The notes under the pieces: model-generated
Databases searched by the model: none
The model's input: the letters and a program-made list of their open reading frames with translations, nothing else
Told to the model about the DNA's origin: nothing
Assembly (NCBI GenBank): GCA_965202585.1
Contig: OZ241833.1
Location: 22,134,001 to 22,198,000 of the forward strand
DNA length: 64,000 bases
Source of the DNA: Thalia democratica
Taxonomy: Eukaryota
Reading direction: 5' to 3'
Made by a program: the position numbers and the translations under genes
In this document: positions 10,516 through 53,991 of the stretch, in pieces
How the letters are laid out: the number at the start of each line of letters is the position of its first letter
Numbering within the stretch: the first letter of the stretch is position 1

Positions 10516-53991
<43,476 letters not shown>

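Follow-up and report, generated by a model that had tools for sequence, protein, structure and literature searches.

Does the intron that interrupts loop 12 of a tunicate kinesin-3 gene contain an optional exon of only four codons, how old would such an exon be, and what could it do to the motor? The K-loop governs how easily a kinesin-3 motor lands on microtubules. The window analysed here is a stretch of 64,000 nt of Thalia democratica DNA that is strongly AT-rich (~24% G+C overall, with exons richer in G+C) and carries a kinesin-3 gene on its minus strand, from ~54000 down to ~11000. We consider a 12-nt sequence in this gene, at 43555..43544, to be a genuine alternative cassette microexon of loop 12, the counterpart of the 18-21-nt microexons of ascidian KIF1A and vertebrate KIF1A/KIF1B that has been shortened to four codons. 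We assign this reading a probability of roughly 85%.

The 12-nt exon, its signals and its use

The host gene is a KIF1/unc-104-type kinesin-3. The transcript-derived protein P0152 is annotated with motor, FHA, KIF1B, DUF3694 and PH domains, and the closest named relatives of the gene are the KIF1A/unc-104 proteins of Ciona, Phallusia and Clavelina (~70% identity), with vertebrate KIF1B/KIF1C next. Near-identical transcripts are confined to marine metatranscriptomes. P0152 was placed exon by exon on the window, and the 28 introns that could be defined exactly in this way constitute the background set for the comparisons below.

Exon 7 (43976..43833, minus strand) ends with ...KVISSLAEQ in phase 0 and is followed by the donor CAA/GTTAGA (a slash marks the splice junction), as given by translation, exact spliced mapping of P0152 and RNA contigs. 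Exon 9 (43004..42841, minus strand) starts with TKSKKKKK; its translation comprises the lysine run of loop 12 (the K-loop) and the start of helix alpha-5. It is 100% identical to the transcript-derived protein P0003 and is backed by RNA contigs as well as by the joints 43004->43833 and 42449->42839, the latter connecting exon 9 to exon 10. The intron between the two exons is 828 nt long.

Further features of the gene can be observed. Two tails are made from it: a long KIF1B-alpha/KIF1C-like exon (32602-34209) forms the end of transcript-derived proteins with 1210-1237 residues, and a 1757-residue form omits this exon and runs on, through exons from 25903 down to 11054, to the PH domain. Two tblastn pieces, at 37401-37535 and 12320-12523, reach no more than 67% and 59% identity to P0152, compared with 90-100% for all other exons; possibly they represent copies of exons, alternative or duplicated, or else exons that are poorly resolved. 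Donors such as those at 43832, 42840, 36518, 25809 and 15673 are unusually degenerate, which may hold for the whole genome of this tunicate, and many acceptors lie behind A-rich rather than pyrimidine-rich sequence. In the intron 3' of exon 9, a segment of ~50 nt (42728-42780) is a dispersed repeat of very high copy number. Its summed contig depth amounts to 63,000-126,000 in DNA-type runs of organism A, probably the source of the window, and of a related organism B, where the flanks reach ~100. Contigs stop at its borders by the hundreds, and it is matched by a few RNA contigs too.

The microexon lies within the 828-nt intron, on the minus strand, as do its splice signals. Its 12 nucleotides, GATGGATCTCAT, encode Asp-Gly-Ser-His (DGSH) in phase 0-0, as seen both in the genomic sequence and in an RNA contig. 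The exon is no longer than 27 nt, a multiple of three and free of stop codons. Its first codon is GAT (Asp), and the protein junction with the exon included becomes LAEQ-DGSH-TKSKKKKK. The sequence immediately upstream reads ...GTTGCTTTTTTGTTTTGCATTCAAG. Here the acceptor AG (43556..43557, context cAAG/G) adjoins a U-rich tract (43558..43580) that contains two UGC motifs, at 43578-43576 and 43565-43563, corresponding to positions -23..-21 and -10..-8 relative to the acceptor. A candidate branch point, UUAAC (43583..43587), fits the yUnAy pattern and would place the branch A 29 nt ahead of the acceptor, at 43584. The sole upstream AG inside 30 nt of the acceptor is found 3-4 nt after this candidate. 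On the other side, the donor GTAAGT (43538..43543) agrees with the consensus, and the downstream piece of the intron (43005..43537) ends in the acceptor ...aattttgcttag, with one UGC at -7..-5. The original prediction had placed a frame-preserving DGSH exon at 43544-43555, directly before TKSKKKKK, with a GTAAGT donor, a U-rich tract and two TGC near the acceptor; the sequence bears out its coordinates, frame and motifs throughout.

The splice signals of the microexon are the strongest in the gene, beyond what chance provides. The region from -23 to -4 consists of 80% pyrimidines and 65% U, which equals the maximum among the 28 other introns (mean 52% pyrimidines). TGC is absent from the last 25 nt of 22 of these introns, occurs once in five and twice in one, while the microexon has two; two or more TGC are present in 1.4% of the 25-nt intronic windows of the gene. 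A GTAAGT donor is used by 2/28 other introns, and 12/28 start with GTT. The AG-exclusion zone, at 22 nt, is not longer than the gene median of 26.5. Seven AG..GT candidates of 3-30 nt, in frame and without a stop, can be found in the 828-nt intron, and the microexon is the only one of them that joins a GTRAGT donor to a tract of at least 70% pyrimidines. A comparable candidate arose in 14 of 2000 (0.7%) dinucleotide-preserving shuffles of the intron.

A longer exon that would use a downstream in-frame donor was ruled out, as the next GT lies 4 nt on and is out of frame. The only other intron with two UGC in its last 25 nt (gttgctgc) ends at the acceptor 25452, ahead of the exon for P0152 residues 733-775. 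The donor upstream of that exon is weak (GTTGTT), and regulation may act on this exon too. A search of Rfam over 42000-44500 gave no match on either strand, and the exon region, folded as a single strand, showed no stable structure (z = +0.6). Tandem repeats are limited to a weak one of two 19-nt copies at 43026-43066, unrelated to the microexon.

RNA was taken from two runs (X1 and X2) of one marine metatranscriptome sample, which represents a whole community, and contigs were compared over 42200-44010. The skipped form is seen as the joint 43004->43833, from which 828 nt are removed (GT..AG on the minus strand), with a depth of 57 in X1 and 5 in X2. The included form is seen in an X2 contig that matches exon 7 to 43832 and continues into a 25-letter loose end. 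Reverse-complemented, this end equals ATGGATCTCAT followed by ACAAAGTCTAAAAA, which a letter-by-letter check identifies as the remaining microexon and the opening 14 nt of exon 9. Because the intron, too, begins with G, the initial G of the microexon is hidden in the exon 7 match. Another X2 contig carries the same 14 letters of exon 9 joined straight to exon 7. Since included and skipped contigs are found in one sample, the microexon is spliced and alternative, as the original prediction had proposed, and the direct joint of 43833 to 43004 is not the only one made.

Inclusion is represented by a single short contig, which comes from one run of the community sample. The RNA contigs are 1-4% different from the window exons and may originate from another population or a sibling species. 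DGSH was not found in the longer assembled transcripts of the species (P0003, P0152 and P0272), all of which have the skipped form. A 61-residue query across the included junction detected no DGSH-bearing protein in a collection of 5.8 billion sequences; the best match, from lamprey, reached 80%. The RNA pattern fits a minor or tissue-restricted isoform. In a related organism, B, a contig over 42984-43660 has 29 substitutions and 29 gap letters, and the surrounding intron is ~8% different. Among the differences listed, none falls in the microexon or its acceptor tract, which is suggestive of conservation of both.

The loop-12 junction in other chordates

Isoform sets for the same junction were drawn from the protein collection, and the microexons of Ciona and Clavelina were also located in genomic sequence. 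Ciona intestinalis has the skipped form ADQ-AKSKKKRG and the included form ADQ-DCNGVST-AKSKKKRG. The corresponding pair is AEQ-AKSKKKRG and AEQ-DNGTSI-AKSKKKRG in Clavelina lepadiformis, and AEQ-TKSKKKKG and AEQ-DVTGTYI-TKSKKKKG in a second planktonic tunicate (81% identical). The single sequence recovered for Phallusia mammillata is of the included form, AEQ-DCSGVPV-SKTKKKRG. Among vertebrates, KIF1B occurs as AEV-SKKKKK and AEV-DNCTSK-SKKKKK, and the KIF1A type as AEM-NKKKKK and ...DSG(L/T)NK-NKKKKK. In amphioxus, represented by three Branchiostoma genomes, AES-SQSGSKKRKK is accompanied by AES-SQSGD(M/V)KKIIK-SQSGSKKRKK. An optional short exon in the loop-12 intron is present in all three chordate subphyla. 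The vertebrate exons that the original prediction had named at the equivalent place (DSGPNK in KIF1A, DNCTSK in KIF1B) do exist, as DSG(L/T)NK in the KIF1A type and as DNCTSK, and the conservation it expected among relatives is found in the microexons of the ascidians and of the second planktonic tunicate.

An Asp-initial first codon is common to every tunicate and vertebrate lineage examined (DCNGVST, DNGTSI, DCSGVPV, DVTGTYI, DNCTSK, DSG.NK and DGSH). Beyond this first residue, the peptides are not alignable. The window exon is regarded as a counterpart of the others because the intron position, the phase and the first Asp codon agree; on these sequence features we base the inference that the exons themselves are homologous, and not the site alone. 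Tunicate inserts range from 12 to 21 nt, those of vertebrates have 18 nt and that of amphioxus has 33 nt; the 12-nt exon of the window is the shortest among the chordates compared.

The genomic copies can be compared in their splice signals. The 21-nt Ciona microexon has ...tttttgctgcaag upstream and gtaagt downstream, and the 18-nt Clavelina microexon lies between ...ctgttttag and gtaagt. GTAAGT is the donor in 3/3 tunicate genomic microexons, while background introns use it in 2/28 cases in the window gene, 2/26 in Ciona and 1/13 in Clavelina. In Ciona, UGCUGC at -9..-4 brings a pair of UGC to within 10 nt of the acceptor; in Clavelina, no UGC is present within 25 nt of the acceptor. The AG-exclusion zones of the two ascidian microexons extend over 45 and 49 nt, compared with 22 nt in the window.

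The amphioxus insert (P0426-P0437, compared with P0417-P0425) begins with four residues, SQSG, that are also the start of the following exon, which suggests that the acceptor and the exon start were duplicated locally to give rise to it. Some older gene models show 'VRY' or a single 'K' at the loop-12 junction (Ciona savignyi P0157/P0159, C. intestinalis P0155). These forms are probably model artefacts rather than isoforms: VRY looks like intron read-through, because the window intron likewise begins with GTTAGA, which translates to Val-Arg.

Regulation of inclusion

An exon of 12 nt would be too short for normal exon-spanning definition, and its recognition would need the consensus donor together with the U-rich, UGC-bearing 3' region. 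In neurons, the UGC pair could act by recruiting an activator of the Srrm type (eMIC), on the model of vertebrate KIF1B. A UGC motif in the vicinity of the 3' splice site, which the original prediction took as the hallmark of eMIC-dependent exons, is indeed a published feature of these exons in fly and mammal, along with long AG-exclusion zones and long pyrimidine tracts (PMC8797185). The window microexon shares two features of the SRRM3/4 type, namely UGC near the 3' splice site and a strong 5' splice site (GTAAGT; the mammalian pattern).

The vertebrate exon provides the model for such control. In zebrafish kif1b, the 18-nt exon DreEX0041536 shows a neural delta-PSI of 87.9 and a delta-PSI of -30.9 on eMIC loss, and its human equivalent HsaEX0034475 responds with +96 to eMIC overexpression. 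DreEX0041536 can be identified as the loop-12 exon because the RT-PCR primers translate to KVISAL and VLTWLL. Deletion of the kif1b microexon in zebrafish causes a mild social-behaviour phenotype, one of two such effects in the deletion series, and a 2026 preprint refers to Kif1b as a well-characterised SRRM4-dependent microexon. By analogy with this exon, we give even odds to a neuronal inclusion of the tunicate microexon that is helped by an Srrm-type (eMIC) activator.

It is also possible, though clearly less likely than not, that the microexon is real and conserved and yet is not an Srrm/eMIC neural exon, being driven instead by a Nova-, Rbfox- or PTBP-type factor or weakly included across many tissues. 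Pfam PF15230 (SRRM_C, eMIC) gave no match at E<=1 when the 802-Mb genome was searched in six frames, but this negative result weighs little, as a 67-position domain that is split by introns is easily missed. The AG-exclusion zone of the window microexon is unextended, the Clavelina orthologue is devoid of a proximal UGC, and UGC is also found near the acceptors of the constitutive exon 9 and of five other introns. The pair of UGC within 25 nt is nevertheless rare in this gene, Ciona has such a pair as well, and the orthologous exon of vertebrates is strongly eMIC-dependent. As to Nova, this factor drives another neuronal microexon in Ciona, that of Agrin, which vertebrates share. A reading of the sequence around the tunicate KIF1 microexon revealed no Nova-type YCAY cluster, only isolated, unclustered UCAU motifs, one in the exon and one ~37 nt upstream.

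Age, proposed motor effect and known counterparts

The distribution of the exon raises the question of its age. The optional exons of ascidians, amphioxus and vertebrates in one and the same intron, together with the window exon, point to a K-loop switch that predates the tunicate-vertebrate split. A stronger proposal traces the unbroken presence of a regulated, optional mini-exon in the loop-12 intron back to the chordate ancestor at least, and possibly to the bilaterian one. We put this forward as a tentative and rather doubtful reading. Constraint would in this case act on how long and flexible the spacer before the lysine run is, and not on its sequence. Continuous presence, if true, would overturn the convergent-origin view that is favoured for fly and mouse. 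Only four fly genes, unc-104 among them, have an eMIC exon where a mouse Srrm3/4-regulated exon lies, and for the unc-104 exons of fly and mouse, which occupy the same position, a convergent origin was favoured (Torres-Mendez 2022).

The same preference could be extended to the tunicate. The microexon would then have been born independently in its lineage, the loop-12 intron would be a hot spot for short optional exons, and the likeness to KIF1A/KIF1B would be convergence. The peptides vary in length, with 4 to 7 residues in Olfactores and 11 in amphioxus, and they share only the first Asp, which could reflect a splicing constraint (AG/GA). The amphioxus insert SQSGD(M/V)KKIIK, moreover, resembles a local copy of the start of the next exon. 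We nevertheless judge independent birth to be improbable. An optional Asp-initial exon is found in the same phase-0 intron in Ciona, Clavelina, the planktonic relative, the window species, KIF1A and KIF1B, and Phallusia carries one. All three tunicate genomic copies have the GTAAGT donor, against a background of ~7%, and continuous presence is simpler than at least five independent births.

That the microexon is splicing noise, a functionless cryptic exon occasionally used through good splice sites, would agree with its inclusion in one short RNA contig and with its skipping in every full-length assembled transcript, but we hold this to be very improbable, given that the exon keeps the frame, that its signals are the best in the gene and rare under shuffling, that positional counterparts with the same first codon exist in all tunicate and vertebrate lineages examined, and that, suggestively, none of the differences listed for organism B crosses the exon or its acceptor tract in an intron that is otherwise ~8% different.

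For an alternative loop-12 microexon, as we read it, a consequence for the motor can be proposed. DGSH before TKSKKKKK would make loop 12 four residues longer and add one acidic residue, so that it would carry about one net positive charge less. A longer flexible loop may alter the reach of the lysines to the tubulin tails. Longer loop-12 inserts reportedly give more microtubule-stimulated activity at unchanged velocity. By analogy, the odds appear balanced that the tunicate insert shifts microtubule affinity and landing rate, in a direction we leave unspecified, rather than speed. For KIF1B, Matsushita 2009 (Traffic 10:1647) is cited for an altered motor activity of the microexon form, and also for a higher ATPase rate and a higher microtubule affinity. 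The natural inserts constitute a length series of 4, 6, 7 and 11 residues, in which the roles of spacer length and spacer sequence in microtubule binding could be separated. The locus also holds a lesson for annotation, since exons of 12 nt get missed.

The nerve-cell microexon in loop 12 of vertebrate KIF1A/KIF1B is already known. What is new is a shortened form of it in a pelagic tunicate, and this finding is largely expected. Several known systems can be set beside it. The Z microexons of Ciona Agrin are likewise a neuronal microexon switch common to tunicates and vertebrates, but belong to another gene and obey another regulator, Nova. Drosophila unc-104 has two eMIC-dependent exons, of 3 nt (DmeEX0010000) and 27 nt (DmeEX0010001), whose match in position to mouse is established at the level of the gene. 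Amphioxus KIF1A, like the window gene, has a short exon of optional use in the loop-12 intron, and the annotations of three Branchiostoma genomes list isoforms with and without it. At 33 nt this exon is longer, however, it adds lysines, its first residue is not Asp, and it resembles a partial copy of the next exon.

The closest likeness is to the ascidian and vertebrate exons. The insert of vertebrate KIF1A (DSGPNK type) occupies the same junction and is found in databases in forms with and without it. KIF1A is a vertebrate-only paralogue, while the tunicate has a single KIF1 gene that makes both KIF1B-alpha-like and PH-domain tails. The ascidian KIF1A microexons lie in the same intron and begin with Asp, have GTAAGT in both genomic copies, and are annotated in both isoforms in Ciona and Clavelina; the acceptor context cAAG/GA is common to the Ciona and window exons. 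They differ in length, with 18-21 nt there and 12 nt in the window. The vertebrate KIF1B microexon (VastDB HsaEX0034475/DreEX0041536) has a kinesin-3 host, the same phase-0 intron, Asp as its first residue and optional use in common with the window exon, and differs in encoding DNCTSK in 18 nt, where the tunicate encodes DGSH in 12 nt. The KIF1B exon is proven to be neural and SRRM3/4-dependent, with a reported effect on the motor; its four-codon counterpart in the pelagic tunicate is known from the genomic sequence and from community RNA.
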